From Takakia lepidozioides (taxonomy: Eukaryota; Plantae; Bryophyta), in contig CM060734.1 in NCBI GenBank assembly GCA_030704615.1, positions 25,606,001 through 25,670,000 on the forward strand: a stretch of DNA of 64,000 nucleotides, given 5' to 3'. The translations under genes and the position numbers were made by a program. Below, piece by piece: positions 15,001 to 64,000 of the stretch. Under the pieces are notes generated by a model. It was not told the origin of the DNA. It made no database searches and worked only from the letters and a program-made list of their open reading frames with translations. Positions within the stretch are counted from its first letter, which is position 1; each line of letters begins with the position of its first letter.

Positions 15001-15001
15001 T

Positions 15002-32241: not shown

Positions 32242-32300
32242 GGGGGCTGCTATTTCATGAGCCATGAGCCATGAGCGGCATGAGCCATGAGCAGAGTCGT
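32242..32300 (+). repeat. Left TIR of E2, (CATGAGC)n
   Basis: GGGGGCTGCTATTTCATGAGCCATGAGCCATGAGCGGCATGAGCCATGAGCAG; inverted copy at ~47360-47427. Confidence 0.85.
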
Positions 32301-32705
32301 AAGTGTGGAAAAAAACATGAGCAGCACTATTTTCCGGAAATGAGTGTCCGCGGGAATAGGGTTTTTAGGGTGCCACGGTCATAGGGGGGAAGGACCTCCC
32401 GATGGAGGAGGTTCGGCAATGTTATTTAGAATTATATATTGAAAGGCAATGTTTCGCGAATGGTAGGGTGGTACTGCTCTGTACAATGGGGGCCCATTTC
32501 AGCCTACCAGCCACTTGCAAAATCCACCCACACTCCCAATCCCAAACGAAATGAGCAATGACGCATTCTGGGAACGATGGACACAGAATAGAATAAAAAG
32601 AGGGCACAATGAGGTTTTTATTGATCCACATGAATTGCATTTGAAGCACGTCTACTGTGCTGATTGTGCCATCAAATCTTGAGCCCTGTGCCTACTGAAT
32701 ACAAG

Positions 32706-33759
32706 TCACGTTGTCAATGGGACTTCGACTGCTCTCAGAACTAGCTCATGAGTCATGGGGCTCCTCCATGTAAAGTCGATTGCAGCCGTTGTACCGCCCC
32801 TAGTGATGTTCACCACAATGTCCTGCCCTTCAATCATACCACCATCGAATATGGAAATCTTCACGTTTTCGTCGTCCACACCAATGCGAATGTCCCCATA
32901 CAATGGAGAAGAGGAGCGCACTCCTTGAGGAGAATAGGTCTCTCCGATGGAGTCCACCCACGTCCAGTGGCAGCAGTTCCACCGCAACAGCATAGCAGTG
33001 CGCCTTCTTCTGCATGGGTGACCGTCGTAGCTGGGAAAATCGGAATCGAGGATGCGCAGGAGCCACGGACTCCTCAGACCAAGATCGTCACCCCGCTCGA
33101 AGGCGTAGTGGCCTACGATATACTCAAAAAAAGCCACCAATGTTTCCACAATCGAACCAGTATCTTCTGTGTAATCTGTGTACCAGATAACAATGTCTCC
33201 CGATGTGGCCGAATACATTGCATAATCGATGCCTCCAAATGGGCAGTCGTCCCGGTTCCGGAAGCACGCATCCTTGCAAAGGAGGACCTGAGGACGACTT
33301 GGATGGATGACAATGACCTTGCGGACAGCTACGAAGCCCTTAGATTTTGGAAATGATCGAAGCGAAGAGCAGTCCGGCCTCCAATAATGGAGCATCTGGG
33401 TCCACGTACCCACCGACGGAGGTGGATGATACATCTTTCTCATCAACAAGTTATAGTTTGAGATCTGCCACCGAAGTCCATCCCCCCGGATGGAAATTCG
33501 GCGCCGCATTTACATCGAAGAGGGGATGGACTTCGTCGTGTCCAGTGGCTATCGGCCCACCTGGCAGTGAGTGCCCATAGTTTGCATGGCAGGGTAGGAA
33601 ACTGAAACGGCTACATTCATGAAGCAGCCAATCTTCATCGGTCCAGGATCCTGTAGGGGGGAAATTTAAATGTGCCCTGGAGTGTTTGTGAGGAATTGCA
33701 GCGTTAGCTTGAACTTTTTCCAGCCACCGCGCCTCCTCCTCCATCCGGGCTGCTGTCAT
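32706..33759 (-). pseudogene. Cargo ORF of unknown function (one apparent frameshift near 33490)
   Basis: 267-aa open frame plus an upstream frame from ATG 33759; paralogous to 33770-34378. Confidence 0.6.
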
Positions 33760-33769
33760 TGAGCGTACT

Positions 33770-34378
33770 CCGCTACTCTTTTTCAAGGATGCCGTGCCGC
33801 CGAAATCCAGCCGACTGCCCTTATCATGGCCACGATTATGCTATGTTCAAACCAGAATCAGGAGACATCATTGTCTGGCTCTCTGTTTTCACAGACGCTG
33901 CTGGAATCAAGCAAGAGTCTTTGCGCGCAATGGAGTATCTGGAGGGCTATTACCGCTTTGAGCGAGGTGAGGGCGAGGGTCAATGCGGTCCGTGGGTCCT
34001 GAAAATTGTTGACCTCTATACCAAGCTGGAAAGGGATGCCGGACAGATCACGCACGGCCTCGCTTTGGCGCTGGAACACTGCTGCCAGTGGACCAGGAGG
34101 ACGGCACCGGGGAAAACTATATACGTGCAGATCACTCCGCTCTTCCAGTGTATGGAGACATTCGGCTGAGTTGCGAAGACGAATCGCACGGGCACATGAG
34201 GCCCACAGTGACCTTGTCAATGTATGATGGTGGTATCATTGATGGACATGACATTGTCGTCGGCTCCAGCAAGGGCAGCAGAACGACCGAATTGCAGTTT
34301 ACCTCGAGGTGCCGCAGCAGTGATGAGCTTGTTTTGAGGGGTATCGAAGTTTCCGTCGACTTGGTGAAGCCCATGTAG
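33770..34378 (+). pseudogene. Second, 5'-truncated paralog of the cargo ORF
   Basis: Shares CP..G.DYAM....GDI..W, Y..G.Y.FERG, PW.L.I.D, CC.WT, P.YGDIR, DGG.I.G.DIVV and ELVLR..EV with 32706-33509; frameshifted. Confidence 0.65.
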
Positions 34379-34618
34379 AAGGAGGAAGGGCTTAGTTTTG
34401 TCTGCAGTTGGTAAATGTGAGACATCGTGTCCGATCAATAAACCCATCGTACCTCACTTCTGTATGATTGTGTTCATTGTTGAATAACTGTCGGAATTGG
34501 CCCACTGTTTACAATTTGATGTCTCATTTCTACAATGTGTCTGTCCGGATGAATATAGCAGTAACCGGTATGTGAGTCATGTGTCAAGAATATACCAGAG
34601 TAACGCCATGTCGGACAT

Positions 34619-35327
34619 GAAATGCGGCACCGCATTTCCACATCGAAATGGGACATTTCATGTGGGACAATGCGGTGCATCATTTCCGTCCAGGTACACG
34701 AAATACCAACACGGGTCTATAAATTGGACAGAAAACGAGGTTGGCATTGCAAATGCGGCGACGCATTTCCAGCTTGGCAATGGAAAACTTCTTTTTGGAC
34801 AAGGGAATGCGGTGCCGCATTTCCGTCCAACACTTCGAAAAGTGTGACATTTCCGACCAGCGCGATGGAATGCGTTACCGCATTTCCGAGAGAGGGTCTG
34901 CAAATGGACAAATTGCGATGTCCGTTCTGGAAATGCGGCGCCGCATTTCCATGTCCGTCATCGACTTTTTTTTACAATGGAATGCGGTGCCAATTTTTGC
35001 TGATGGGCCTGCAGTTCGAACAACGACCATCCCCAATGGAAATGCGGCACCGCATTTTCAATTCCGCCATCTCGACCTCCTTGTTCGACCTCCTTGTTCG
35101 ACCTCTGTAGCGTGGTGGCATCCATGCAATGAGCGGGAGAGGCCAAAACTGGCGTGTGGACAAAGGAAATTTTGGAAATGCGGCACCGCATTTCCAATTC
35201 GATTACTTTTTACTATGCCAACATTGAAATGGAAAATTTAGTCCCTCCCCTTTTGGAAATGCGGTGCCGCATTTCCAAAAGAGGTTCTTAGAGTTGCCAA
35301 AATTTTGGAAATGCGGTGCCCCATTTT
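34619..35327. repeat. Cluster of about 11 GGAAATGCGGYRCCGCATTTCC palindromes
   Basis: Centres include 34628, 34759, 34813, 34876, 34939 and 35048. Confidence 0.92.
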
Positions 35328-35464
35328 CTGATTTTGGGAGCGTCGTGGTTTGGGCGATTGTGTGGCTGGAATGCACACTGGAGAGGGTCACGAATGTCGG
35401 GCAGAATTTCCTTTATATACTCTGGAAGAGAATTTACATTTACAGAGACTTCATTAAAATTCTA

Positions 35465-38400
35465 TTAATCTTGAAAATCATCCGAATCCTCATCCTGTTC
35501 TAGACTGTCCTGCTCCGCCTCCACCCCCTCAGTGCCTTCTCATCTCCAGCGGACTGCTCGTTGGCCAGGCTTTCGAAAATCCCATCTTCCCCTTGCGGAA
35601 ACTGTCCATCTCACCTCCGTTGGGTCGTCTTCCTCCCTGTCTGCGTCGCTCTCATCCGCTGAATCACATATGTACTTTCGTACCCGTACCTGTCTGAGCT
35701 GCTGCCAACTCTTTCCTTATCCTTCTGTCCTCCCTAGCCCTCTCCAAAATCTGCTCTACTTTACTGGGATTCTCACTTCTTCTAATCGCTGTATTTGCGA
35801 GTTTAGCTGCATAACTAGGAAGGGAGTAGTCCCTCACCGGGCTCGTCATGAAGTCGGCCCTCGCAAAAACGGGACCCCCCAATCCTGCACATGACAATCA
35901 TCAACGAGACTAATGAGAACCACAGTCGGGAAATTCGTTTGACATAAATGACCCAGAAGGCTTTGCAAACTTACAATGTTTGCACTCACTCGTATTCCGG
36001 GTTCTCCTCCGCATCAATGTCCACTGTGTCTTCCTCGGACTCCGACGAATCCGAGGAGACTTCCGCTCTGTCGGGAGCCCACATTCCGTTGCAGCCCTTC
36101 CAGATGGGATCCCCACACGGATGAATCCTCGTAGGCAAAGAGGTGCCGGTCGGAAAACCGCCCAGCCCACATTGAGGCACCTGTTACAATGCATCCACAC
36201 ATTACCACATGGCGCTTCAGATGTTGCGAACTACATCCTAACGAGAATTTGCAGAACAGCATAGATCAAGATTCTGCATACCTGTCCCACAGATGAGGTC
36301 GAGCACTGTGCCCTCCACGTCTGTGCATGTCTCCATAATTGTCTGAATGAAGGCAGGGCTCCGAGTCCGTGAGTACCGCAGGGGTTCCGTTGAAGTGAGG
36401 CTATGAGGGAGAAGTTCCTTGGGAACGTTGTTGAACAGAACGTCGTAATCGAGTGGGTCGCAGTTCGGGTCAACCTTTCCTCCCTCCTTCCGGAAAGCAA
36501 AAGGTGGAGTTCTCCTTCACAAAGCAGTATGCATCGAACTGCTTCGTCTGCATACACAGGGGGAAAACGATTAGAAACCGAATGCGGCACCGCATTTGAA
36601 AACACCCAAGCAAATGAATGGACGAGTGCCAGTGTCGTAATCACCTTCTTCCCTTCCGACCGAAGGCCCAGTGTGTTGATGCACGTCCACTTCTTTTTCA
36701 GAATCGGGACGGCGCTTGCGGGTCCACTTCGCAATTCCTGTCTGAGTTTTTTCCTCTGCTCGCCAGGACAACCACACAGCCTCTGTCGTCCAACACCATG
36801 CGGGCAAGCCCGAATCCTTTCTTCCAAAAGTCCTCCGAGTACCTGTTCCAAGATGGCAAAGCTTGCAGTCCTTCCACAGGCTCTCCGTCCGGAATATCCA
36901 AGATGATCATATCGCAAGACCACTCGGTGGCATTTCCGCCCCTCCTACAATCCTTGTCTGCACACACCCTCTCAAAGAACGAGACCATATTCTGAAATCC
37001 TGGGGTGTCGGAAGGCTCTTCGGCAGTCGCCTTCTTCAGTGCTCTGCCCTTCAGACCCTCCATGGTCTTCATGTATGCCAACTTGGCTGCCCGTCCATCC
37101 AAAGCCGCCAGAAACTCTCATTTACACACTGGACTACTGTTTCGGGAGCCACTTTCGGCCTCTTCATTTCCACCGGCTCGAAAGGGTGCCCCCCTGGGGG
37201 GTTGAAGAGTGCCTTCTTTGCCGAGCCAGTTCTCGTGCCTCTCGTGACAACGGTGGGCACAGGGGAGGCAGCCTGCGTTTGGGGGGGTGGGCTGGTTGCA
37301 AAGTCTCCATCGGAGTCCTCCTCCTCACCCTCTTCCTGAACAGGCTGTTTCTGCTTCTTCGTTTTGGCGGGTGTCACAACAGCTGCTCCTTGCTGGCGAG
37401 TCCTCTTCTTCGACCCCTTCTGTTGGGCCTGCACAGCTGCATCACCCGTCTTTTGTGCCATCTCAGCTGCCTTTCTGGATTCTTCCAGAGCAGCAGATTC
37501 CTTTGCCGACTTTGGCCCAGCAGGGACACGTCTTTCCTTTCTCTTTCTCTTCTGCCAAGGCGTGCAGATCTTTCTCAGACTCGTCAACAATACCGCCAGA
37601 CATGTCCAGGTACCACGGGCATCCAACGAGATGCGCGGGATGCCATTGTTTCTGCATCTCGGGTGTGTAGACACAGCTTGGGCCCGCCCACGGTCCAAGC
37701 CATGAAGAACGGGGGCTCTTGAGCCAGGGCCCCTGTCTGAAGGAGCACGTATTTCATACCTGCAAGGCAGTCAGCATGCGTGAGCAAAAGTTGAGACAAC
37801 CTACTCGCAGAGTGCCACCAAAACATAAAATGCGAATGCGGTGCCGCATTTCCGAGACAAACCTCGTAACCAGGCTTCGCATACAAGGGCAGCTGTGCTT
37901 CACCTGTAAACAATTCGCATTGCAGCTTTCCCCGCTCCCTCCTGATGTGTAAACTCCACGCTCCTTCTTGCTGTCTGTAGCTCTCTGGCGAAAAGGTTGT
38001 CCTTGTACGCACATCTGAAACGTGTCACGTAGTCTTCCAATGTCTGTGTTCCATCCCATTTGACGTACAAGCCGAACGAATTGTGTGCATTACGACTTGC
38101 TCCTTCGCATTCGACATTACCTGCGATTCCCAAATGCATTGTCACGTAGCAGTTCAGGGAATTCATGTCAGAAAAGCAAATCTGGGGAAGTACTTGAATT
38201 ACCTGGAACCACCAAGTCATACGGTTGAGCCACACATCCACTGCAGGGTCGGAAACTTCCAGTGGAAAAGACCACATTGTCCTTATGCTCTCGGATGCAT
38301 TCCAGATCGACAGCCACCGTGTCTGCCATTTCCGATCCAATGTCAGGAGCTGGAAGAGAGTGGCTATTGCTAGGAAGGAACTTCAGTGCATTGAAACCTC

Positions 38401-40524
38401 ACCTCTCTTTCGCCTCCACACATGCCGTTGAGAGGTGATGCAGTTTCTCCAATTGCATGGTCGGCTGCATGGCCCGAGAATAGTGTTTTGCAATCTCGGG
38501 GATGAAGTCCTTTCCAAGTGCCGGATCTGCAATTGCCACCAGCTTCACAAGCTTTGACTTGTATTTGGTTCTGGACTTGACACCGGCTTCCTTCAAGTGC
38601 TCAGTCAATGACTGCAACGTTTTGACCTGCCCCTCACTTTCCATGAAGAAGCGTTTGGCATGGGCCAAATCCAGCTTGATGTTTGACTGCCAACAAAAAC
38701 ATGCAGAAGCGTTACATTCGATTCATGTGGAAACATTACTGAAATTGGGGAAGGATGAGCAGAGGGAAATTGGAGGACGACTTACTTCGTATCACCTCCA
38801 CCATTCCATCCATAGTGAGACGATACCATGTCCGGTCTGTTTTTGCAACGGCTTCTGAATGAGCTCGGGCTCCAGCATTTCCGCAAACATCTGCGGATCA
38901 GTGAGACCAGTTTTCCTCACCCTGTACAGCATATGTGCCATGTGGGTATGCACGTACGCATTCTCAGTGACCCTGCAAGGCACACTCTCCAGTTCAGTAC
39001 ACGGAAGCACGGAAACAAACCAGAATGGAAACCGAAATGCGGCACCGCATTTCGAACGTGCTAGGGAGGGTATGAGTATCTTACGAGTTGAGGTCCGCCA
39101 TGGCATTCTTGAGCAGGGAGGAGTCTGCCGCCTTCACCTTGAGGATGACACACTCCACCATGTAATGCCAGCCAATGTGCTTGGCATGGTTCTGCTTGAT
39201 GTACTCCCACCAGGCGAGAAGTCGGTGATTCCCGTCCCACACAAAGAAACATTTTACCCGACATATGGCCGAAGTCTGGATCACCCTTCAGCGTCGCCTC
39301 GAATTCGTGGTTGCGAGTGTGCCAGTGGGTATCCCACGTTGACAATTCATCGGCAGTGGGTCCACGAGTTTCGCCGTCCTCATTCTCAATGGAAACGTAA
39401 AACGCTGCCGATCCCAGACGGTACCCTTCTCGAAATGCGAACTTGAGCTTATCCACATCTCCGGGAAGGGCCTGCCTGACGATGGGAAGGGAGACCATGC
39501 GACAGAGTGGGATTCGAAGAGTCCGCTGGAATACCCTGCTGCCCAGAACTCTGCCAATGCTACTGTGTGTCTCCTCCAACATTTTATCCGCTGCACTTTT
39601 GAAATCCTCCGGAGACATGTCTGTAGGTAGGCCGGTAGTGGCTGAGCAGCTGGAGCATCCTCAACTGGAGCTGCACTCTGGGGCCTGTCTGCGGGCAATT
39701 CTGCCATTGCAGAGGCCTCCTCCGGGCCTGCTTGCTCATCGGTGGTGAGGTCTTGCTGCGAACGTTGAGCGGCAGCACCCTCCTCCGGTACAAATCGAGA
39801 TCAACGGTCGATCCCATTGCCTTCGCTGCAGCAGAGTCGGCCCCAACATCTGCAGGCGGGAAATCCTCCAGGAACTGAGCTTCAGCTCGTGGAAGCGGTT
39901 TTGCGGGAGATTGTTCGCCGTCGCCCTGATTGCCTTCTGCTTCCTCATCCTTGCAGGTGAAGGTGTCTGCTGCAATTGAATCTGTCTTCTACCCTGCTGC
40001 TTCATTCGCGTTGGGGGGGGGGGGTGAATCGGCCTGAGCCGGTTCAGAAGCCAGTAGAGGGACGGGCTGCTTCTTCTTCGACTTTGCTGGAGAAGGGCCC
40101 GACCCCTGCTGGCGATTCTCCATGACCGAAGAACGCGAGTCGATCTGGGGCTTTGAACTTGCCCTTCGAAGACGCGTCTTTGAATCGCACAGGGCTAGGC
40201 CCGGCAGGAATACCCGCGCTCGGGGATCGGGTGGGTGTACGTGCTGCAGCTAGCTCCTCGGACTCTTCCTGCGGCTCTTCGGATTCCTGCGATCCCTCCA
40301 GCACGTCCACCTTTCCTGTTAGGCATGCAAACATGTTCTGCATTCAAGTCTCCTAGCATTCAGTCTAAGAATTACAGAAGCAAAATGGGGGGTTCGGTGC
40401 TCGATCAGCTGCGCGCAGCCCGATCGCATGGAGCTCTCACTGGTGGCTGGGTTGCCTGAGTGGCCTGCTGCTCGGAGATGGCAATCTCCTCCTGTAGACG
40501 CATCTGCTTCCTCCCCTTCGGCAT
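35465..40524 (-). pseudogene. ParB/Srx-like + beta-class amino-methyltransferase-like fusion gene of E2 (multi-exon, frameshifted)
   Basis: IPLCRMV..VR..DVDKLK..F..GY..FYVS..FFVWDGNHRLLAW (DGNHR 39222-39236); MIILDIPDG (36884-36898); RSPAFIQTIMETCTDVEGTVLDLICGTG|ASMWAGRFSDRHLFAYE (~36370-36125, intron inside motif I); acidic tail. Start codon tentative. Confidence 0.8.
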
Positions 40525-40955
40525 TGGCCTACGTCCGAAGTATAATTTCCGGAGCTTGCGACGAGGTCTGTCTGGTGCACGAACTCCCCCCCTCTCAGGT
40601 TCGAGCATAAGAAGAACAGAGAGGGAAAAGGGCAAAGAGTGCAGATGGAAAGGGCGCGAGAGGGGTGACTGAGGAGACACGACAAAAGTAGATGAAACGG
40701 CGGTGATGCACCACTTGGGTTCGAAAGGGTTGGACGAAAGTGTCTCCTCGTGGAGTTTGCGTCATTACGAAATTCGAATCGTTCAGGGTACGCCTGCCGT
40801 CCGAAAAACAAACATCATTATCCAACGGTCAGGCCGCGCCGCCTCATGCCCCTTCAGTCAGATAGAGTGCCGACATGTGCAGCAATTCCGTTGCTCCACG
40901 TGTTCACATTTCAAGGCATTTCCGTCCCAGCGTCTGATGAGTTGGAGCGAAAATG

Positions 40956-42578
40956 CGAATGCGGCGCCGCATTTCCGTTAAGTACCATCACGAAGCTACA
41001 CATCCGTACTTGTTGGAAGAAAATGCGGCACCGCATTTCCGTTCCACCTTCACATACCTTAGTTGTTGAACGGAAATACGGTGCCGCATTTCCGTCCCAC
41101 AGCTCCATGTATGAGATTCAAAAGGGAAATGCGGCGCCGCATTTCCGTTCTGGAATGTCGAAAGGTGCGATTCGGACGGGAATGAGGCACAACATTTCAG
41201 TTCCCGTGGTTCATGATTTTCAATGTGAACGGAAATGCGGTACCGCATTTCCGTTCCCCTTCACATACGTTAGTTGATGAATGGAAATGCCGTGCCACAT
41301 TTCCGGGAAAGTATAGAGGTCTCACCTGGACAGAAATGCGGTGCCGCATTTCCGGGAAAGTTTGAAGGTCTCACATGGATGGAAATGCGGCAACACATTT
41401 CCGTAGCACAGCTCCAGGCCCCATATACAAAACGGAAATGCGGCGCCGCATTTCCGTTCTAGAATGTCGGAAGGTGCGACTCGGACGGAAATGCGGTGCC
41501 GCATTTCTGTTCCCGTTGCGCACGATTTTCAGTCAGAACGGAAATGCGGTACCGCATTTCCGTTCTGTAGAGTATTAACGTCTGACGCTGGCGGAAATGC
41601 TGTGCCGCATTTCGTTCCACAGCTCCATGCCTCACATACAAAAACGGAAATGCGGCGCCGCATTTCCGTTTTGGAATGTCGGAAGGTGCGACTCCGACGG
41701 AAATGCGGTACCTCCGATGTTTCAGGGAACGGAAATGAATCTAATACATTCCGTTCTGGAATTTGGGAGGTGCGACTCGGATGGAAACCGCATTTCAGTT
41801 CCGATGTTCACGATTTTCAGTGCATTTCCGTTCTGGAATGTTGGTAGGTGCGACTCGGATGGAAATACGTGCCGCATTTCAGTTCAGATGGTTCACGATT
41901 TTCAGTCAGAACGGAAATGCGGTACCGCATTTCCGTTCTGGATAGATGAATGTCTCAAGCGGTCGGAATTGCGCTGTATGAAGCTGTCGGAATCGCACTC
42001 GGCTCCATGCATCAGATACAAAATGGAAATGCGGCGCCGCATTTCCGTTCTGGAATGTCGGAAAGTGCGACTCGGACGGAAATGCGGTGCCGCATTTCTG
42101 TTCCCGTTGTTCATAATTCTCAATCAGAACGGAAATGCGGTACCGCATTTCCGTTCCACCTTCACATACCGTGCTTGGTGGATGGAAATGCGGTACCGCA
42201 TTTCCGTTCTGGAGAGTATGAATGTCTTTTTAAGGACGGAAATGTGCTGCAGCATTTCTATCCCTCAGCTCCATGCATCAGATACAAAATGGAAATGCGG
42301 CGCCGCATTTCCGTTCTGGAATGTCGGAAAAGTGCGACTCGGACGGAAATGCGGTGCCGCATTTCTGTTCCCGTTGTTCATAAATCTCAATCAGAACGGA
42401 AATGCGGTACCGCATTTCCGTTCCACCTTCACATACCGTGCTTGCTGGATGGAAATGCGTTACCGCATTTCGTTCTGGAGAGTATAAAGGTTTCCCCCGG
42501 ACGGAAACTCGGTGCCGCATTTCCGTCGCTCTGGTGCATGACCAAGATGCAATACGGAAATGCGGCGCCGTATTTCCG
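40956..42578. repeat. Intergenic array of about 27 palindromes (A)CGGAAATGCGGYRCCGCATTTCCG(T), 53-bp period, with higher-order repeats
   Basis: Centres 42035, 42088, 42141, 42194, 42248, 42301, 42355, 42408, 42461, 42513, 42566. Perfect 34-bp palindrome at 41534-41567. A 266-bp unit repeats at 42002 and 42268. Confidence 0.96.
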
Positions 42579-43005
42579 TCCACCAGCAATCGAAAGAATC
42601 ACTCGGGACGGGAAATCTGGAACCTCAATGGGTTGCATTGTTCCGAAACAAACACAATTGCGGCCAGTCTTGATGAGCACAACTTGGTTGTCTGACCGTT
42701 TTAACTAACAGTCCTGGCACTTGTCAGTGCGAACGTTCCTGTCTGCACCGAGAATACTGCTGGATCCACCCTCAGGAGAAACTGTCAGGAGATGTTATTT
42801 CGTCGCCGAATCGGCCATCATTGTCATACTACTGGCTATGGAATCAAACCTCCCACCTTCATGCATGTAGCTTGAAACAATACTTTCCACTTCAATGTGC
42901 GACTTCCAATCGTCGATGGACTCCGCAGATCCACTTAGATGGTGCCTGTGAGCCTTGGTCTGTCGCTATACTGAACCTCGCACTTGCCAACTCCGTGCGG
43001 GTTCG

Positions 43006-46000: not shown

Positions 46001-46599
46001 CAAACAATGCAGAGGCTCCCCCGGTGTGGCCGGTGGAACCAGGCTGCGATCTGAGTCAGGTTGAGGCCGACGCCCTTACCGCCGCAGGATTTCGGATGGT
46101 GCAGCGCACTGACGTCCCCAGAGAACCATTTCCGCTTCCACAGCCTCCACCACCGACCCCTGTGAGAGAGCAAGAACAATGGGACACGACAGCTCTAAGC
46201 ATCCTACACACCGTTGGGGGAAACCGAAGAGGGCGGCGACCCCCCTCAAAAGTGAACGAGACAAGGATGGGGAATGCACTTCGGATGAACTGTACAATCC
46301 AGAGCTCGACAGAAGTGCCCCCACCAGGATTCGGGCGTGTGTATCAGATGGCCACGGCGGGCTCAGCTGTTCGCAATGAGGTGTACACCATCACCATTTC
46401 AGAATTACCCACCTGCAATTGCACCGACTTCCAGATCATGGCGAACAAGGGGGCATCATACTGCCCTTGCAAGCATTTGTACTACGTGTACCTAAAGAGA
46501 CTCCGTTGTAATTCCACAACTCATCACTTCATACATGCACCAGGGTTGAGCCCCCAGGAGGTTCACACTCTTCTGAATATGGATCCAGGGGACCAGTGA
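43006..46599 (+). pseudogene. MULE-superfamily transposase of E2 (GCM-like Zn finger, DDE core with CxxH, C-terminal SWIM)
   Basis: HDGHPW..CAGKLRCLNPTC..CAHC..C...C..HVGVHCHP; WVMFD (D1); FRGFMADNAQANWAAVRRVY (D2); ERSCGFHW (CxxH); PNTNMAESVH (E); CNCTDF..CKHLYYV (SWIM). One intron ~45085-45167; several frameshifts. Confidence 0.88.
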
Positions 46600-52751: not shown

Positions 52752-52985
52752 CAACCTTCTGTTAACAGAAGCTTCATTTCGTAGAACTGAAATGAACCTC
52801 GTGTCGACACAAGGGGGATTTGGAGAACTTCAACAAAACCTCGTGTTAACACAAGGTTGTTTTCCTGGAACAAAAATGAACTTCGTGTTGACACGATGTT
52901 GTTTTTTGAGAACTAAAATCATCCTTGTGTCAACACAAGGAGGATTTGGAGAACTTCAAGTAAACCTCGTGTTGAGACGAGGTTG
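52752..52985. repeat. Six palindromes AACCTYGTGTYRACACRAGGTT at an exact 42-bp period
   Basis: Centres 52763, 52805, 52847, 52889, 52931, 52973; an 84-bp higher-order unit. Confidence 0.92.
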
Positions 52986-53147
52986 ATTTGATCATCTGTC
53001 TATCTGAAGGTAGTTTCTTCTGTTTGCTAATGAAAAGAGAATGACAAACCAATGCGACAAATGCATTGACCCACGCATAGCAAATATGTTAGACGTCATA
53101 CATTGAGAGCCACTGGACTTGAACAGTCATTCCATTACAAGTTGTAG

Positions 53148-56100
53148 TCAAGGAAAACACCGATTTTTATGGCTTGTATCCCGCTGTAGAAGTGTGTTGA
53201 CTTCGTTGAAACTCATAGTGGCTTGGTGAATGAAGAAGTCGCGCTTTGGATCACAAACCATCCTTCTCAAGAAGACGAAGTAAAGGTGTTTGCACGGTAT
53301 GAACTTCCCTCTCTTTCCCAAACTACTTGAAAGCATACCAACAAAATCTGGACATGTACAATTGGGAAAATTGGAAACAGTGATTTCGTACGTCCTGTCC
53401 TGCAGCGCAGATGCGGATGAGATCATGGTGAAGACCCGACCATACCCTGGATCAGGCACTTCCATTGTTCCCGCAACACGAGCGTGAAGCATTCTGGCGG
53501 ACTCAATTTTGCCGTAGTGTTCTGCGGTTGGAGGGAATCGTCGAACAAGCTTCCCGTTCCGTCTGGTTGGCCACAAGTGAGCGTCAGGCGGAGGTACCCG
53601 TGAACCGCTTCCACTTGAAGCACCTTCACGTGCAATGGAATGTCTGGCTAGGGAGAAACCCGCCTCTTCCAGCATTGCAATCTCTCGATGAGTGAGACCT
53701 GTGCCCATCTTCACAGGCCACACGGTTGGTGGAGTAGGCTTCCTTACCACGGAAGGCCTCACTGTCCCATGCACACATCCCACAATCGTCAGCGCAGAAC
53801 CAAACTTGTGGTTCTTTGCCTCGCCTTGTCCGTAAGGAGAAACAAACCGTGAATGTAGGAGCTGCAGTGCGTTCTTTCCCTCTGGATATTAATGATGTAC
53901 ATTTTTCATGATTGGTGGCCCGTGATCGCCGCGCATTTCACACGCGATCCAGCACTTGTGCGTTCTATATGCAAACATCGTCCAAGCCCAGACTCGATTA
54001 TATGCGACACCACGTTCTGGTCTTCAACCATTGCAGTGACAGTGCTTGATGCAGGGGTCCGGTCTGGGGCAGAGTAGCCCTCACCTGTGGATGTTCCGCA
54101 ATTCCATCTCTGATCCAAGGGAACACGTGGCGTCGAGAAGTTGACCCTGTCCGCCCTATGGGAATCTGCATCCGATCCCGGAGGGTGTCCAATTTCCGTT
54201 TGCAAGACCCGAATCTCTCTTCGCCTTCCAGATGGGGAACTCTTCCCACGAGAGGGGTGCCATCTGCACATATGCTCACTGCCCGCGCTATTTTGCTAGG
54301 ATCCCCTGATCTTCCAGCTGCCCGCAACATCAACTCGCTCCTGTCCGGACCTTTGCCACCAAGGCCACCCCTCAAGAATGACCTGTATCTGGTTTGCTGC
54401 TGTAGAGAGCACGAATAAGGTCATCGGCCGTCGCTGCATACAAATCTCTCCCTTTTTGCCGGATTGCTGCAACCAGGCATTGTGCACTGTCTCCGCAAGA
54501 TTGCAAGAAGGCATGTCCGCCATCTCCTCAATGGACATATGCTGCAAGGCAAAAAAACACAAAGCCCATATTAGAGTTGGACCCTGAAAGATATATTGGA
54601 AGCACCCAAACAAACTTTTGAATGCAAACCACTCACCGTTGTCATGGCCGCTCCCCACTGTCGGTAACGGAAGTGCCAAAATGCGAACCAGTCTTGCAGT
54701 GCCCTCATGCTGTCCTCCGATGCCGCTCCAGATGAGTACCACCAGGCACGAATTGTCTGGAACAATGTATTCGCTTCCCCCATAGTTTTGGCGTCTTTGT
54801 ACTGTTTGCACAGTTGACGATGCATACTCTGCATATCTGGCTTGATGTACGTCTTTGTGTGTTTGTCGAGGGATTGTGTCCAATGGAAAAGACACGTACG
54901 TTCTCTTCCAGGCATTGGCACTTTTGGATCTCCCGAACACAATGCGGACAGCGTTGAAGTTAGCTTGAGCACTATCGGCCATGAAACCAACGAAATTGGG
55001 AGATGGGAGACCATTGGAGGCCATAACACGAATGAGAGCTTCCCACATGAGCTGCTGTGAATCTGTGTCCTCTGACTGCATGTCACACACTGCAATTGTC
55101 ATGACCCGCTGGTACACAGGGTCGTAAACATGACATGCCATTGTGGTCCAGTCTTTAACTCTCTTGACATGATCGAACATAAGGAAGCAGTTGCCAAGAT
55201 CGCCACCCTTCTGCATACGTTTAACCAGGCTGACCCCGCTGCCCTCACCTTTTGTGGACATTTTGAACAAGAACACTTTCCTGGCTCCTTGTCCCGGGAA
55301 AACGCTGTCTTGGATGTAGTCGTACATGCTCCTTTTCTTCAAATCCATAATATTGTCCATATAACCTCGGCTCCCAGAGCCCATTCTTAAAGCGTTCACC
55401 TGATTCCTAATGTTTGGAGAAGTCAAAGCAGAGAAATGGTCCATAACAGTGTCCAAAGCTGGTCCTTCCAGCATTCCTCCAACCGAATTTGATGCACACA
55501 GAATACGGCTTTCCAGAAAGGACTTGCTCGCCCCCATGGCAATTGCAGATGTGGTGCCAGTTGGATTGGTATCCACTCTTGCCTTATCAGACGAGAGACT
55601 GTGTCAACGCTCTCCTATAATCCCCCTTGGACACAGGGTGGTTGTGAAAACCGAAATGGACACAGGCTCTAGTCAGGTTTTTGAATCGATGCACCACATA
55701 ATACATTCTGGCGCCACACAAAGCAAGGCAGCAAGGTGGTACCCTACAGAACTTGCACACAAAAGTGTTACTGTATGGTGGTGTTACCCCAGGCTTGAAT
55801 GGATTCTCACTGACTCCATCCCATTCGCTTTGGTTTTGCACACCTGACAATGCGAAGTGTCTGCATTTCATTTCTCGCATTTCAGGTGCCCATTACAGAC
55901 TGTTCGCCTGAATATGAGGTTGTCGTTGTTGTGAATATTGGATGTTTTGTGCGGCACCAAGGGTGCCCATCGTGCTTTTTGTCCATTCCTTCCAGGAGAC
56001 TGGAAATCCCCCCACGCGACCAGGAGGAGGCAGCTCAAAAACAGTATTACCATCAAACGATTCCGGCAAGAAATGCCACCCTTTCAATATTGAAAGTGCT

Positions 56101-56653
56101 CCAGTCTATCCCCCAACTCACTCTTGAATCCTGCCATCCCACCCATCGCTTTCAATTTAGGAATGACACTGGAGATCTCCTCCACATCTGGTTCTACATG
56201 TGGACATGGCTGATCCACAGGCGGAATTGCACATGTGTCATCGGAGGATGAGTCCGAAAGGTCAACTACAGTGTTAACGGCAGTCGCCTCCTTCTTCACA
56301 ACCACTGGTGTCTTCTCCTGGGCCACTGATGCTGCCGTGCCAGGAGTTACGAACGATCCTGCAGACTGTCTCAGAGGAGCACTGAGCACCCTGTATCTGC
56401 CTGGAGGCACTCTCCATTGCGTGGTTGGTGCAGTTTGCGATGGTTTCTGGAATGCGTACTTGAGCAGTTTTCCATTGGCATCGTACACTTCCCTCTGAAG
56501 GAATAGACTACCATTTTCCAACCGAAAACTGCGTTGCGAGGACGAGTTCATGAACCACCGCAAAACCATCATCTTCCACCTCGTAAGAAAATGGAACAGG
56601 GTGGTCGTCACTGAAGAAGTCCGCGTCAAGGGAGCCACAGCCTGGGAAGCCAT
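53148..56653 (-). pseudogene. MULE-superfamily transposase of E3
   Basis: TSNIHNNDNLIFRRTVCNGHLKC..CKFC..HFGFHNHP; FLMFDHVKRVKDWTTMACHVY; FVGFMADSAQANF; ERTCLFHW; PSCNLAETVHNAW; CTCPDF..PCKHLYFV. Same intron position as E2. Confidence 0.88.
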
Positions 56654-57398
56654 ATGTCGATGTTGCTACAGAAAGTACAGTTCAAAGTCCGATGGTGCTT
56701 CTGAATGCAGGTTGTGTGAGAGTGGAGTTTTGGCGTCCTCATACACAATTGTTCTCTCAGAATTGCCCCACCAGTGCAATAGCTGACAGATTCACTGACA
56801 GAGCCGCCAATGTCGTTGTCATGTCAGGGAGGCCAGAAGAGATGCCCATTTCCATTAAATTTTGACGGCGACTGCACCGCTGCACAACTGAATATAATTC
56901 TCATTCCTCTGGAACATTCCACCCTAAATTACCCAACAATGAATTTTTTCAGATGAGAGTCGATTACACCCTAACGATTTTTGGATGGATGATGTTTGAA
57001 TGATATCTGCCGTTATACATAGGGTTAGACCCCAACGAATTTTGTAAGGATGATGATTCATTGATCTCCGCCGTTAAACATAGGGGTAGAGATACCCCGA
57101 TTACATTTTTGGAAGGATGATGTTTCAATAATTCCGGCCGTTTTACATAACGACTACATAGACACGTGTTCGCCATGCATGTGGATTGAGTCGGTGGCGC
57201 ACTGAACGGTCCGAGCGAACATCTTGGCGTTGAAGGCCCCGCGATGAACCTCAGATAGTGTTCGTTTTTCCTGAGTAACTCATTTTCTTTGCAACCCTGG
57301 ATTCCGCAGAGACGGTGTCCCTACTTCGAGGGAGAAGCAGGCGTCGAAGAACACTGTATTTCACGTCAAACAAGGAAAGGGCACGCGCTAAGGAGAGG

Positions 57399-60300
57399 AT
57401 GAGAAAGGCGAGACGGGAGCTTAGAATGGGAGAAGAAACCCCGCGAGATGAGGAAGAGGAAGGGCAAAAGAGGATACGGCAACCGCAGTGTGGAGAGGAA
57501 GGTCTTGAAGTGATCCAGGAGGCGACAGACGAGCAACCTGCAATCGAAGGAGGGGATGAGGAGGAAGTAAGTTGGGCTCGGGAGGAAGCAGTGAGTGTAC
57601 AGAACCTGGCCTTCAAAGACCAGGGAGAACAAACGGACGTAGGAACGCGGCCGTCTGCCCCTGTTTCGCACCATCGCGACCTCCTTGGAAGCATGCTACC
57701 TGAAGACCGCATGGAAAAATTGAACGCGAGGAGCATCATCAAGTGCAAAGCAGAAACCCCAGGTAGCTACGAACTTTCTTTTTCTCTCTCTGTTTCTGTC
57801 TTTTTCTCTCTCTGTTTCATGCTAAGCATTGAGGACGACATCAACCTTGCGTCAACGCAAGGTTGAAGTCGACCTCCAAAGTGTATTTGCTGGGCTCAAA
57901 TCAGTGCAGATACTGCACCACAATCTGTACTGTTTCATGCTAAGCATTGAGGTGGACATCAACCTTGCGTCAACGCAAGGTTGAAGTCGACCTCAATGCT
58001 TTTTTGCTGGGCTTTAAACAGTGTAGAAACTGCACTACAATCAAGGTAGAGAGACATGGATGCTTCCGACGCATCATGGATTTCAAAGACGAAGCAGAGA
58101 CAGGAGTCTCCATTTACTGTACATTTTTGCTTTGCTGAACCCCGATAAGACAGCTCGCAATCAACCTTGCGTCAACGCAAGGTTGATCCCAACCTGCATA
58201 TTGTATGTTTAGAGCTTGTAGTGAAACCAACAGAGGCTGCACAGGAATCAACCTTGCGTTGACGCAAGGCTGGTTTTCATGATAGCTTTGCACAATGGAT
58301 GCGTCCGATATCCCACTCTCCTCACTGTAAGGTAGGGAAAGTTCATTCTTCGAGGCTCCCAAAAGAACCCTGCGTCAACGCAAAACATAATTTGGGTCCA
58401 AACGTCTTTCCTGTATGCCTTTCAGTCTAAGTTACTTCCCCATCAAAACCTTGCGTCAAAGCAAGGTTGATGCATGGGAGCTCAATCTCACACTCACAGA
58501 TTATTAATTCTGTGCAGAGGAAGAAAAAAAAAGCCGAGGGGGAAGATTTGGCCGCTTCAGAAGGTGAAGGTGATGAAGAGTCACTGGAGGGACACTATGA
58601 AGACAAGGCCGAGGAGATAATGGGTGGGCAAAAAGTGAACTCGTCGAAGGTGATTCTGTCGATGGAGGTTCCCGGCGGAAACCTGGTCATTCCGCTTTGC
58701 AGGATGATCTCCATGCCCGCTGTTCGACCGGCATTGAGGAATGATATAACAAAGTTGAAGAACGACTTTGTTCACGGCTATGTGAAGGGATCAGCAGTGT
58801 TCTACGTATCCACTATGAACACAAAAGGAGAGGAGTGTCTTGTAACAGAGGACATTGAGCAAAGTTGGGATGAATGCTGGCGGGATGTGAACAGGGAGTT
58901 CGAGTTCAAGCTGTCGAAGAAGACCTCCACAAAAGCATTCATGGGGAAGATGTTTTTTGTCTGGGATGGGAACCACAGACTGCTTGCCTGGATGGATTAC
59001 ATTTCAAGCATGCACTCTGACGACATTGGCACTGGGAGCGTGGGTTCTGGATCACAAAGGGCATGCACACGCAGCTCACAGCATGCACGACATAAATAAG
59101 TAAGTCTCCATCTTTGTGTCTGTTCCTCGTTTCGACAATTAGAAATCATCTTATGAGTTGACGGTTTTTTCCAGGTCCAACGAAACATCTCATGTGACCA
59201 CCAATCTGTGCCACACTCTATTCCGCATCCAGAAGGTAGGGCTGATGCCACTGGAGTCATTCACAAACGTGCTTAGTCCACAGCAGATGAAGAGGTGTGC
59301 TGAGAAGAAGACAAGCACATGGTATAGCTTGACAAGAGAGGCTTTCCTTGACTACATGTACACTGTAAGCTTCTTGACACTACTGCTTGCTTTTGACACT
59401 GCAAGCTTCTTGACACTACCTGTTGTTACTATTTTCTCACAAGTACTGACAGTGTTTCATTCTTTTTACCTGCAATGTATGCAGCAAGAAATAGCAGAAA
59501 CTGGCTTGAAGGCGAAAGCTGAGTACTATGATTCCACACTGAAGAGCAGCGGTCTGCATCTGGGCTTGAGGACACGATGAAGTTCGAGATGAATAATCAA
59601 AGGAAGAATCTCATGAGTGCATTCGACAAACAAATCAGGATAGCAGATCCAGGGCTTGGCACAGAATTTCTGGCAGGTGAAAGTGCACTATGACAAGTTT
59701 GGCTCCAAGCCAGAAATGACTCAGGAGAAACTACATCGCCTTTCCATTTCAATGGTGGACAATGCAACGAAAATCAGGTGGTTGGAGATATGGAACTCGG
59801 ATCCTCTTGTGAGACACGAATATGTTTCCAACTCCAGAGAGAGACCCGAAGACACAAGCAATAAAAGTTGTAAGCGACCAGACATTCGACAGTGGCTACA
59901 AAAGCCACATTTTGGAGCCAGGTAAGGATACCACCAAACCATTTTCAGACATGTGTGTTGCTCCGTAATTCCGCTCCCAACCTCTCCAAAATGTCTTACA
60001 AGCTTTCTTGATGCAGTTAGAAAAACGTGCAGTGGCTGCACTTGCTGAGTCGATGGCAGACTACAAAATCCAGATGGCTTGCCCCCGGATCACACTGGAG
60101 GCCTATATCATCAGGAGGTGGAAGCTCGCTGTCTGGAACAATTGCTTCTTCAGGGAGTTTGAAAAAGACAAAGGAATCTCCAGATCGTACGAGTTCAAAA
60201 ACCAGCTGAACAGCGAGCAAGCAATGAAACGAGTGTTGTACAGGTGTGATCTCCTTACTCAATTGTGGTACTTGAAGGGCATGCATCTGCAATCTTCTGT

Positions 60301-63208
60301 CATACTTTCAGATTTTGCGAATTTGCGTGGCTTTGAGGGATCTCTGGGGGCTCTGAATGTGCTGTCCAGCAACATTGCGTTGACCATGGTCCTGGTTTCA
60401 CTTACCTATATCTGGGTATCCCATACTAGCGTTTTATTGCATGTGAATGGGGGTGAATGGACAGGAAAATCAGCCTTGCGTCAACGCAATGTTGATGAGA
60501 CGCAGACTATGTACCTTTTCCTCTGGTTTGGGGCAGTTCAAATCCAGATCCAATTTTTCAACTTGAACATAACAATGTTTGGAGTCTATTTCAAATGCTA
60601 TTTTTCAGCTTTCACTATGCCAACAAACAGACTTGCGTTGACGCAAGGTTGTTTGGCGGTATGGATTGATGGAAATGTCCCTGTGCATCCCCCAACTTCC
60701 ATGCAATTGTAGGAGACTTTCGATTATCAGATATATTATCAATGTTTGTTTCAACAGAGGAATTCAGCATTGCGCCAACGCAATGTTGAATATCCATAGC
60801 AGTACATAGTCAGATGGTGGTTTTCAGGCATTGTTCCCCATTTCATCTATGTGTGAAAACAACATTGCGTTGACGCAATGTTGTATTGCACTTGTCAGTC
60901 GTTGTCTCTATCAATACAAACCACTAGGTGTTTCCCATTTCTGCTCGAATCAACATTGCGTCAACGCAAGGTTGATTCTGGACAGCAAAAGTTGATTACC
61001 AGGTGTTCCCTTCCTTTATTTCAATATCTTCTTCTGAATGTCTGTTCTTTTCCATTTTCCGATTGACTGACTGTCTGGGTTTTTGGTGTTTGATTTAGGT
61101 ATATGTATCATATCCTCATACCGGAAAAGTACCTTAGCGATGACCCAGACTTCATCTATTCATGGCTGACCCCTCCAATGAGAAGACAATGTACACGGCT
61201 GGTATTGCCAGAGACTGAGCAGGGCGCACTTCAGAGACTGTGGGTGGTTACCTCGACCTGCCAAAACAGGACACACCATTCGATGAAGTTGTTTTGAGAA
61301 ACCTGAACGAGACAATGCCGCAGCGATTGCCCCATTGGCAGACAAAGACATTCAGGACAGAATCATTTCTACTCTGGCTGCAAAAGAGCCCGAGAGAACT
61401 GCCACCCAAAACGAAAGGGGAAGACTGTCGGGGATCCTAAGGGAAAGGGGAAAAGTGCAGCTCCTAAAGGACAGGGACCGTCAGAGGTTCCTGTCAGAGA
61501 GCCTTCTCCCGCAAGGAGGGATAGGAGAACATCAAAGTCGAGGGAGCAGCCTTACGAGGCGAGAGAACATCCCTCCAGGGTTTTGGGCCAGTTCAATCGT
61601 AGGGTGCTGAATGAAAGTTTTCTTGCAATGATGGAGTCCAGGAAGTCCACATTCAAAGGGGTGCCCTCGAAATCATGGGACATGCTTGTTTCGTTCCTCA
61701 CTCAGGTAAACACTTGTGTCTAAACTGTTGTATGAATAATTGTGTTTTGGCATCTTGTTGTGGCTTTTCCAGGGGATTGATCTCCTGCTCGATTTGGATT
61801 GGGCTTCTTACACTGTCTCCTGTTTTTCCCTGTAGGTGACAAAAAAACCGGAATGGGTGAATGGAGTTCAGCAGGCATACGCGACTGACCTTGTGGTGCT
61901 GGACATTCCTGACGGTTATCCCGTCCCTGATGTGTTCCCTTCCAATTCGACCCGACTTGGAACAAATCGGATTCTCGTTATTGGCAGTGGGCTTTCTCGT
62001 TCAGCAACAAATTCCTTTCGGACTCGGGGGCTCTTCTTCTCATGCAGTCAAAGGACATGTCGGCTCGAAGAACTCTTTTCAGCTACATGAAAGCCTCGGG
62101 TTTCGTGTCGTCAAAACTTGGACATGCATCAATACTCTGCCTCTTACGAAGGGCGAGTTCCCGGGGCAGAAAGTGAGTTGGTTCCTTTCAATTCATGTTC
62201 GTTGTTTTTTCGGTAAATAAAAATGCTGGGTTATGCCTTCTGTCTCATGCTCTCCTCATTGTTGACAGACACGGGTGTTCGAAGCTTTGTGCCTGGTGAG
62301 GCGGAAGGACACTCTTCCTCCTGGTGTTGCTGAGTTCCAGATGAGGGACCTTGCAGCTCATATTGACCCCACCTGCGAGCCTATGGAGGATGATGTTCTC
62401 TTCAATTACGTGGACTCGGGTCGAACTATGAAAAGGTCGATTGGTGTCCCTTGGAGAGGTGCACGGGAGAAATCTCCAGCTTTCATGCAGACTTTGGTGG
62501 AGACATGCAGCCGTCATGGTGGACGAGTGGTCGACTTGTATGGGCACAGGTGGGGCACTTTACATTGTGATTGACATATGGGCAGTAACCTTAGGGAAAC
62601 CCTGTTTTCATTTCTCGTTCTTCTTGGATTTGCAGGAGCATGTTTTCATGCTTGCAAGAGCGCCGGAAGGCACTTCTTCGGCATGGAAGCTGATACGGAG
62701 CTCTTCTCGAGCGAGCTTCGTCAGCTTGAGTCGGACACTACTTCTACCCCATCCAAAGAGGGACTTCTGGAGGAGCCCGAAGCGCCTGACGAGGATCTGG
62801 ACGTTGACTCCGATTTTGAGTGTGAGTAAGTTCTTCTGTAGTCGTTCAAAATATGTGGCATTTCCTTGTGTCGTTCCCGTTCGAAAAAATTGCGTAACAT
62901 TGTCTATATCTGGATGTTAACATCTGCCACCATTTCTCTTGTTCCTTTCCAGAGTTCTGCACCAGTCATTGAATCAGCAGACACCTTTCGGATTCCAAGG
63001 ATACTACATGTCCCCGAGTCCCCCTAGATCCAACCGCTTGCCGGTTTACGCGGAAGCTTGCGCACGGGTGTTATCCGAACAAACACTGTATTCGCATCTC
63101 CATAAAGGTCGTGGAAAAAAAAAACGTCATGTATGTGCTGCTGTATTCATAGATGATATTGCTATTAACTCTGGCAGTGGTTCCTCTGAAACCTCCAATA
63201 TTTCTTGA
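57399..63208 (+). pseudogene. ParB/Srx-like + beta-class amino-methyltransferase-like fusion gene of E3
   Basis: IPLCRMISMPAVRPALRNDITKLK..GY..FYVS..FFVWDGNHRLLAW (DGNHR 58965-58979); LVVLDIPDG (61902-61916); EKSPAFMQTLVETCSRHGGRVVDL..GTG|ACFHACKSAGRHFFGMEAD (~62465-62695). Multiple GT-AG introns; ends approximate. Confidence 0.82.
57841..60975. repeat. About 11 palindromes (TC)AACMTTGCGTYRACGCAAKGTT(GA) in two introns of the E3 ParB-MTase gene
   Basis: Copies at ~57841, 57959, 58161, 58247, 58367, 58447 and ~60472, 60631, 60768, 60860, 60950. Confidence 0.9.
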
Positions 63209-64000
63209 CGGTTCAAGTACTGAGGCTGAATAAATTGTGTTTTGGCTTTGCTTCCATCCCATACTGTTTTTCAAGTTCTCTGCGCGTTCCCGTAAGTACA
63301 GTTAGGGATTGCCTACGGTATTTCTTCGGAGTGCGGAATTGAAATGTGTGTGTGGAGTGATGTACTGCTTTGCCAAAAAAACATTTTTCTTTTCAGATTC
63401 AGTTCTGTAGTGGGCGATCTCCTCATTCCAAAGTCAGGATCTCCCACAAAATTCAACCGCAAACCTGCCATTGTTCTCGGCCACAAGGAATATTCATGTG
63501 GGGGCAGTAAAGAGGGATAGAAAATTAGGACATAGGGGGGGGGGAAGCACGGACATAGGTAAAAGGGGGGGGGGGGGGAGCACGGTAATAGGGGTGAGAG
63601 CACGGAACCGCGGTAATAGGGGGGGGGGGGCACGGAATTAGGGCCTGAACACGTGGATGCTTGCTGATGTGGCGTGAGCCTAGCCAGGCTCACAGGCTCA
63701 CAGGCTCACAGGCCAGGCTCACGCGCAAGCATTCCCCGGTCCAGAAGCACTCGTTTTGCGTGGGGGAGTGGCAGATGATACCAAGGTGACCCCAAGTCTT
63801 GCAAAATGCTGCATGGATGTATGCTGCGCTCCCGAAATTTCGGTCCATGTCTGCACACGTTTGAACCCACGCTTTGCGGGCTTCAGTCTGCAGATCGTAA
63901 AAAATGCTGGAGAGGAGAACATATATCGTAGTGGTTCCTGAGAAGGTGTTCTTACAACGGATCTTCCAGAGGTGCCATAATGTCGATCCTCTAAGGGTTT

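Follow-up and report, generated by a model that had tools for sequence, protein, structure and literature searches.

Background

Why would the DNA transposons of a bryophyte carry a gene whose predicted product resembles ParB at one end and a DNA methyltransferase at the other? This question is raised by a 64,000-nucleotide stretch of the Takakia lepidozioides genome (assembly GCA_030704615.1, contig CM060734.1, positions 25,606,001 to 25,670,000), which as a whole we refer to as the window. Two transposons within it, E2 (15.2 kb, positions 32242-47428) and E3 (11.2 kb, 52515-63736), have a layout in common: a transposase gene divergent from a large multi-exon gene, here called the accessory gene. 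A first-pass annotation of the window had delimited both elements, read the accessory gene as a ParB-methyltransferase fusion and drawn attention to palindromes specific to each subfamily. Here we present the computational analysis that followed up these claims.

We favour the following reading and consider it rather probable. E2 and E3 would be decayed copies of autonomous Mutator-like cut-and-paste transposons, from a family of non-seed land plants, in which the product of the accessory gene targets the element that encodes it. As part of the same reading, and held with the same confidence, the accessory gene would comprise about 1,100-1,250 codons and join a ParB/sulfiredoxin (Srx)-fold N-terminus, through a long conserved middle, to a PF01555-like C-terminus that keeps methyltransferase motifs X and I.

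Results

The accessory gene in the window

The accessory gene of E2 is a decayed multi-exon gene on the minus strand (35533-39618). Its ParB/Srx-like exon (39066-39549) holds FVWDGNHRLLAW in a shifted frame. Another exon (36737-37114) contains a motif IV-like DIPDG followed by a W...LDDRGCVVVL strand, and the motif X/I exon (36280-36501) reads SPAFIQTIMETC..GTVLDLICGTG, with a post-motif I segment at 36086-36184. In E3 the gene lies on the plus strand (58467-62829) and presents the same parts: a ParB-like exon at 58653-59030, again holding FVWDGNHRLLAW, a DIPDG region at 61863-62071 in an exon that ends at 62173, motifs X and I at 62266-62538 and a post-motif I segment at 62644-62814. A third copy, fragment F (48399-51162, minus strand), is a truncated accessory gene of the E2 lineage, with 58 % amino-acid identity in the DIPDG exon.

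All the motifs quoted in the first-pass annotation could be found again, namely FVWDGNHRLLAW, DIPDG, SPAF(M/I)QT..ETC..G.V.DL and ..RH.F..E. The two additional fragments that it listed are real as well. One is fragment F, and the other is an isolated piece of transposase on the minus strand (29092-30303), of the same family as the transposases of E2 and E3.

A family in liverworts and ferns

An exhaustive HMMER search with the N-terminal exon of E3 as query returned 506 cluster representatives of the accessory-protein family, mostly single-exon fragments from environmental or assembly contigs. The named relatives belong to the liverwort Riccia sorocarpa and to Adiantum ferns; no alga was found among them. 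Riccia has dozens of diverged copies of the gene, and several of its predicted proteins are 1,040-1,250 amino acids (aa) long. The fusion is seen in a single protein of Riccia (P0153, 1207 aa), in which the WDGNHR box and the C-terminal motifs occur together. In three contigs (L011, L012 and L013) the two domains are collinear on the same strand, 3-5 kb apart, and an Adiantum gene model of 5.4 kb (P0059) includes both. Another model, P0082 of Adiantum nelumboides, was rejected as evidence for the fusion: it extends over ~125 kb for 651 residues and is probably a chimera joining pieces of several transposon copies.

Several Riccia copies (P0151, P0153, P0154, P0283 and others) bear the UniRef name 'Trimethylguanosine synthase', and one is a 'Profilin' or 'peroxidase' chimera. 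The trimethylguanosine synthase identity was rejected, the sole methyltransferase match in Pfam and NCBIfam being PF01555 or 'DNA methyltransferase'. Because no other methyltransferase family is matched, the UniRef names look like annotation errors. Such misnamed copies inflate gene counts.

A ParB-like fold at the N-terminus

The AlphaFold model of the N-terminal domain, built from a 34-sequence alignment, has a predicted local distance difference test score (pLDDT) of 81. When this model was compared with the PDB using Foldseek, all 50 of the 50 best matches were ParB, Noc, KorB, sulfiredoxin, SerK, SbnI or PadC. The best of them, 6sdk_A, has an expectation value (E) of 1.2e-2 at a probability of 1.00, and template modelling scores reach 0.60 against Arabidopsis Srx. 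In a library of viral structures the named matches are likewise mostly ParB-like and include a mycobacteriophage 'DNA methylase'.

The most conspicuous sequence feature of the domain is a (D/E)GNH[RHW] box, present in 102 homologues and ending in R in 97 of the 102. Its G, N, H and R fall in invariant or nearly invariant columns. We infer that this box is equivalent to box II of ParB and to the G-x-x-R of the Srx GCHR motif. A tblastn comparison of the ParB-like domain with phages was uninformative. We accept a ParB/Srx fold as the predicted structure of the N-terminal domain, with modest statistics.

Methyltransferase motifs at the C-terminus

The C-terminal domain matches the Pfam family PF01555 in 8 of 14 Riccia copies (E<=0.01), with a best E of 1.9e-7, and several copies carry a precomputed PF01555 match. 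The scores that we saw directly are 20-26 bits against a gathering cut-off of 26.7 and cover positions ~165-218 of the 221 in the profile. An open reading frame (ORF) from a contig of another lineage gives an E of 1.3e-4; the window exons alone give 0.058 at best. When compared in hhalign with five N6/N4 methylases from phages, the domain aligns along motifs X and I (94.4 % probability, E 9e-8). These motifs, which bind S-adenosylmethionine (SAM), read GFVQTLLENFT.QGDIVIDFAGGWG...VAE in Riccia and SPAFMQT..ETC..G.VLDL.CGTG ... RH.F..E in the window.

When the hhalign alignment is extended, ADCLYLDLPSG of the family pairs with svDlilcDlPYG of the phage enzymes, and the next strand pairs with the matching strand. 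The motif IV so defined is D-[ILMF]-P-[STDIE]-[GD], with the variants DIPDG, DLPSG, DMPTG, DFPIG, DLPDG and DMPED. As judged from the sequences, the order IV ... X-I fits the beta class of amino-methyltransferases. In a sequence search of the PDB the best matches were CcrM and DpnA, both sub-threshold. That a ParB/Srx-fold domain is joined to a beta-class amino-methyltransferase-like domain, as proposed in the first-pass annotation, is thus borne out by AlphaFold and Foldseek, by PF01555, by hhalign and by the Riccia protein P0153.

Linkage to the transposase and selection

The divergent pair of transposase and accessory gene recurs beyond E2 and E3: at two Riccia loci on different chromosomes (L001 and L009) and in a contig ~90 % identical to E3 (L002). 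The description of the accessory gene as a stable second gene of the transposon is upheld by these three loci, in each of which it lies divergent from a transposase of the same family.

Selection on the gene was assessed from the ratio of nonsynonymous to synonymous substitution rates (dN/dS). Between E2 and fragment F this ratio is 0.13 in the DIPDG exon and 0.26-0.34 in the other exons, compared with 1.15-1.6 in wrong-frame controls. From these low values it follows that the gene has been maintained by selection along active lineages. Two Riccia copies that are 98 % identical have a dN/dS of 0.98, which we read as post-insertion decay, as expected of dead copies, rather than as a sign of functionlessness. 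The constraint expected by the first-pass annotation was therefore recovered between old lineages (0.13-0.34), but young copies evolve at a ratio of ~1.

Decay of the window copies

The reading frame of the E2 accessory gene is broken near 39250, within the WDGNHR motif, and near 36745. That of E3 is broken at ~61945, 26 nt past DIPDG, and near 62050, and that of fragment F near 49660. We considered, and rejected, a frame change that E2, E3 and fragment F would have in common, located past the post-motif IV strand and before the W-C-I-N-T segment: the break sites differ. Elsewhere in the family the frame from motif IV to motif I is uninterrupted (L011, 9872-11134; L013, from 2590). Because these ORFs are uninterrupted and the positions of the breaks differ, the frame breaks of the window copies are attributed to independent decay.

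Palindromes around and inside the gene

Four lineages of the family have palindromes of their own. In E2 a 22-bp palindrome, GGAAATGCGGCGCCGCATTTCC, is present in 35 copies, with two more in fragment F, against 0 expected by chance. A cluster of eight lies downstream of the accessory gene (34618-35328), and an array of 23 with a period of ~53 bp fills the space between the divergent genes (40955-42577). The remaining copies are inside the accessory gene, with single ones near each element end. The palindromes of fragment F, at 50737 and 50798, are degenerate.

The palindrome of E3, CAACCTTGCGTCAACGCAAGGTTG, is 24 bp long and has 9 sites, again against 0 expected, upstream of and inside the accessory gene. 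Five copies lie between the divergent genes (57842-58469) and four more inside the accessory gene (60471-60974), presumably in an intron. A degenerate form of this palindrome makes up a subterminal 42-bp array at the transposase end of the element (52751-52940). The E3-like contig L002 has the same array and E3 palindromes too. In L011, arrays of an 18-bp palindrome lie upstream of and inside the gene, with no transposase in the flanks.

The claim that the palindromes are specific to subfamilies and adjoin the gene is confirmed, since they are distinct in E2, E3, Riccia and L011. All four lineages, each with a different palindrome of 18-24 bp, have arrays 5′ of the accessory gene, and in E2, E3 and L011 there are copies inside it. 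This distribution, as read from sequence, fits binding by the ParB-like protein without amounting to proof.

At the centre of the E2 palindromes (33492-46871) all variation consists of CpG-to-TpG/CpA changes, with 7 occurrences of GGCGCC, 5 of GGTGCC, 5 of GGCACC and 6 of GGTACC. Such changes are the footprint of 5-methylcytosine (5mC) deamination, and the E2 palindromes were therefore probably methylated by the host. The observed-to-expected ratio of CpG is 0.85 in E2, 0.67 in E3, 0.55 in fragment F and 0.43 in the retroelement region of the window.

Element ends and the Mutator assignment

E2 is flanked by an exact 9-bp target duplication (CCTCCGGAC at 32233-32241 and 47429-47437) and ends in imperfect terminal inverted repeats (TIRs) that match at 93 % over 41 bp. 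The direct repeat that flanks E3, CGGTCCAGAAGCA at 52502-52514 and 63737-63749, is 13 bp long, which exceeds the 8-11 bp of the Mutator class; it may consist of a 9-bp duplication and four adjoining positions that match by chance. The inverted termini of E3 match at 90 % over 30 bp. The delimitation of two elements with one divergent layout has held up, both being bounded by inverted termini and flanking repeats.

Short repeats in inverted orientation occupy the ends of both elements. The left terminal region of E2 (32242-32330, plus strand) has six CATGAGC repeats (32256-32316), mirrored by six copies on the other strand in the right terminal region (47325-47428; repeats at 47330-47399). The termini of E3 are built from GTGAGCC repeats, with three to four per end (52528-52628 and 63687-63716). 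The two repeats have a common core, TGAGC, and differ from the internal palindromes. By their sequence and placement they are candidate transposase-binding sites.

The transposase of E2 (43414-46599, plus strand) comprises a Cys/His N-terminal region (43837-44136), a DDE core (44196-45458) and a SWIM region (46018-46584). That of E3 (53148-55892, minus strand) has its SWIM region at 53178-53729, its core at 54250-55579 and its Cys/His region at 55596-55892; by comparison with an unbroken relative in L002, the frame of the core changes near 54880. In Pfam the SWIM finger is matched by PF04434 (E 3e-5). The translations contain MFDH, GFMAD.AQAN, C.FHW.QS and N.AE(S/T)VH at the spacing of Mutator-like elements (MULEs), as recognised by eye and not by a profile. 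Neither the Pfam MULE family (PF10551) nor Transposase_mut (PF00872) gives a match at E<=1 with the window ORFs or with six full-length homologues of ~700 aa, and NCBIfam gives no MULE match for the transposase either. The duplication of 8-11 bp with TIRs that characterises MULEs is found, in E2 as an exact 9 bp with imperfect TIRs. Thus the MULE label given at first stands on the 9-bp duplication, the SWIM finger and a D..D..CxxH..E series read by eye, but not on a match to PF10551 or PF00872. We regard the assignment of E2 and E3 to Mutator as partly backed by this evidence.

In the left arm of E2, in addition, an ORF of ~200 codons is present in two copies that have diverged and lie inverted to each other (32715-33266, minus strand; 33795-34357, plus strand), with 38-41 % amino-acid identity between them and no Pfam match. 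The pair may represent captured sequence, or else a third gene belonging to the element.

The rest of the window

The window is eukaryotic, transposon-rich sequence. Positions 1-28000 are occupied by nested Ty3/gypsy retroelements, in which gag, protease, reverse transcriptase and RNase H are present; one retroelement has a dUTPase-like segment (10591-11508), and two others (15056-18276 and 23979-27782) are related copies inverted with respect to each other. A tandem repeat with 10/20-bp units (CTGTGTCGGG, 28487-28796) adjoins the isolated transposase fragment.

Discussion

A model of self-targeting and what weighs against it

On the reading that we favour, the ParB-like module would recognise the palindromes of the element, which are of the size of parS sites. 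This recognition would bring the methyltransferase-like module to the element's own DNA, where it would either mark the DNA with N6-methyladenine (6mA) or N4-methylcytosine (4mC) or act without catalysis. The outcome could be that expression or transposition is regulated, or that silencing by the host is countered. In algae, too, the ParB-methyltransferase accessory proteins of transposons have been suggested to target their own element in this way (10.1101/2025.02.11.637652, PMC12477816).

Several results weigh against this reading. As assembled, all window copies of the accessory gene are broken, in comparison with uninterrupted homologues. For the N-terminal domain, Foldseek returned no E-value below 1e-3. 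The Pfam profile ParBc (PF02195) gave no match at E<=1 with the window exons or the full-length homologues, and searches of PDB sequences, with the exon and with the 34-sequence profile, found no ParB match. The ParB domain announced in the first-pass annotation is consequently supported as a fold match by Foldseek but not as a PF02195 profile match. At the C-terminus, statistical support is limited to the ~50-60 residues of the SAM-binding half. The motif IV half alone gives an hhalign E of 2e-3, compared with 2e-2 for a reversed control, and the AlphaFold model of the domain has a pLDDT of 38 (14 rows, 13 from Riccia and one an Adiantum fragment). At three loci (L010, L011 and L012) the accessory gene occurs without this transposase in the flanks, of which 4-10 kb is available on each side. 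Linkage across genomes, seen at Riccia L001 and L009 and in L002, fails in these three, and it is therefore common, not universal. Possible explanations for these copies are that they represent non-autonomous derivatives, that they travel with another type of transposon as in red algae, or that they have been domesticated. Further points concern motif IV and the palindromes, and they bear directly on the alternatives.

The aromatic residue of DPPY is absent from motif IV in every copy examined, so DIPDG cannot be upheld as the canonical motif IV that the first-pass annotation took it for, and catalytic activity is doubtful. The methyltransferase-like domain might thus be catalytically dead, and the protein a non-enzymatic DNA-binding or nucleoside triphosphate (NTP)-switch factor, such as a ParB-like clamp or bridging factor. 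It could organise the element ends or promoter, or serve as a transposition cofactor like MuB or mudrB-type helpers, with the SAM pocket kept as a structural part or sensor. We take this to be possible, if doubtful. It agrees with the free variation of the fourth motif IV position and with a ParB box far better conserved than the methyltransferase core, and inactive partners of the METTL14 type, with a degenerate motif IV, are an established precedent (PMC4738411). However, purifying selection has preserved motifs X and I, and the D and P of motif IV, usually with its G, are nearly invariant. The phage comparison enzymes have DLPYG, DPPYG, DIPYN or DPPFN, all five with an aromatic fourth residue; natural phage enzymes already tolerate D-L-P-Y-G, from which the family differs at only one position. 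At the other extreme, the protein could be an active, sequence-directed amino-methyltransferase that works with a D-[ILM]-P-x-G loop and a ParB-type NTP switch, writes 6mA or 4mC at the palindromes and so shields the promoter from 5mC silencing; such genes could even be the source of the beta-class methyltransferases of bryophyte hosts. We consider this strong form improbable.

The palindromes admit a different explanation too, one that we judge rather unlikely: they would be transposase-binding or promoter/satellite sequence, and the accessory protein would act elsewhere, on host chromatin, RNA or other DNA. In DNA transposons, transposases commonly bind to arrays of subterminal repeats. The transposase co-diverges with the palindromes, which could equally be its sites. 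Two palindrome types occur in the Riccia elements, the first (9-10 sites) only between the genes and the other in both subterminal regions. At L001 the first lies at 8507-9352 and the other at 2629-4253 and 14352-15146, a separation that could help assign the binding proteins. In L012 the gene is present and no palindrome arrays were found, and some eukaryotic PF01555 clades are suspected RNA enzymes. Set against these points, the extreme termini of E2 and E3 use another repeat, CATGAGC or GTGAGCC; the arrays lie directly 5′ of the accessory gene in four lineages, one of which, L011, has transposase-free flanks, and palindromes occur within the gene as well; and in red algae inverted-repeat arrays adjoin the ParB-like gene (10.1101/2025.02.11.637652). 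Very improbable, in our view, is the capture of a host gene or gene fragment, as in Pack-MULEs, that would serve no function in the element. Capture of host sequence is frequent among MULEs (PMC6446971) and some copies of the gene occur without transposase, but the divergent pair recurs in Riccia, in the window and in the related contig, the family is multi-copy with ~500 cluster representatives, dN/dS between lineages is 0.13-0.34, and no single-copy host orthologue was seen.

Comparison with known systems

The first-pass annotation had presented the elements as an undescribed system. That claim fails because ParB-like and methyltransferase accessory proteins have already been reported in algal transposons, in Ectocarpus Sola1-1_Ec32 and in red-algal elements (10.1101/2025.02.11.637652, PMC12477816). 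According to PMC12477816, Sola1-1_Ec32 encodes, opposite its transposase, a 1104-aa ParB-like/DNA-methyltransferase protein, and such proteins of Ectocarpus are proposed to bind and epigenetically modify their own element. Compared by this description only, the window family resembles Sola1-1_Ec32 in having one ParB-like/methyltransferase protein opposite the transposase of a large DNA transposon. It differs from it in host, which is a brown alga for Sola1-1_Ec32, and in superfamily, which there is Sola1 and not Mutator-like.

The red-algal Plavaka, Mutator and Zisupton elements (Bostrychia) carry two comparable genes (10.1101/2025.02.11.637652). PAG2 combines PF01555 with SET, and PAG3 a ParB-like N-terminal domain with a 2-oxoglutarate (2OG)-oxygenase. 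Tandem inverted-repeat arrays adjoin the ParB-like gene, and the accessory genes move between superfamilies, including Mutator elements of Chondrus (10.1101/2025.02.11.637652). Thus PF01555 and ParB-like domains occur in transposons with adjoining inverted-repeat or palindrome arrays there as here. However, PAG2 and PAG3 are separate proteins with SET and 2OG partners, whereas the window family has the two domains fused in one protein and a land-plant host.

Mobile elements are enriched in ParB-N6_N4 methylase fusions of phages and bacteria, in which the ParB-CTPase fold serves as an NTP-binding module (PMC12704722). These fusions have the same two domain types, and the best fold matches of our N-terminal domain include a mycobacteriophage 'DNA methylase'. 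Unlike the window family, the fusions come from prokaryotes and lack introns, and all five phage methylases that we aligned keep the motif IV aromatic. Scans of bacterial and viral collections with one or two short patterns found no close relative; being limited to such patterns, they say little on distant donors. The horizontal acquisition from bacteria suggested in the first-pass annotation thus stays a hypothesis.

Other transposon genes act on the epigenetic state of DNA by different means. The paper 10.1101/2025.02.11.637652 mentions fungal KDZ/Plavaka elements with TET/JBP genes, and VANC of the Arabidopsis VANDAL elements, which acts sequence-specifically on its own repeats. As described there, these resemble the window family as DNA transposon genes that act on DNA epigenetic state, but they have 2OG dioxygenase and VANC folds and work by demethylation or anti-silencing, not amino-methylation. 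Prokaryotic-type beta-class enzymes are in turn known to act on eukaryotic nuclear DNA, in Marchantia (MpDN4MT1a/b; 10.1101/2021.02.12.428880) and in bdelloid rotifers (N4CMT; PMC8885841). These are of the same amino-methyltransferase type, and MpDN4MT1a/b is found in a liverwort. In contrast to the window family, MpDN4MT1 and N4CMT are host genes with canonical TSPPY or SPPY motifs; neither has a ParB-like domain, and neither is described as belonging to a transposon.

The ParB-methyltransferase type is absent from the MULE accessory ORFs listed in a 2019 survey (PMC6446971), a 2016 survey of eukaryotic adenine methylases has no such land-plant clade, and the literature that we searched holds no description of a ParB-methyltransferase gene in land-plant elements. 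The window family is a new land-plant, Mutator-like member of the transposon-encoded ParB-methyltransferase accessory proteins. The invariant loss of the motif IV aromatic raises the question whether the methyltransferase-like module is an enzyme at all. With many diverged copies and matching lineage-specific palindromes, the family provides a natural data set for testing how transposons recognise and mark themselves. Earlier mentions of such proteins, of a few sentences each, cover the transposons of brown, green and red algae; the window family extends this class to land plants and to a Mutator-like transposase.

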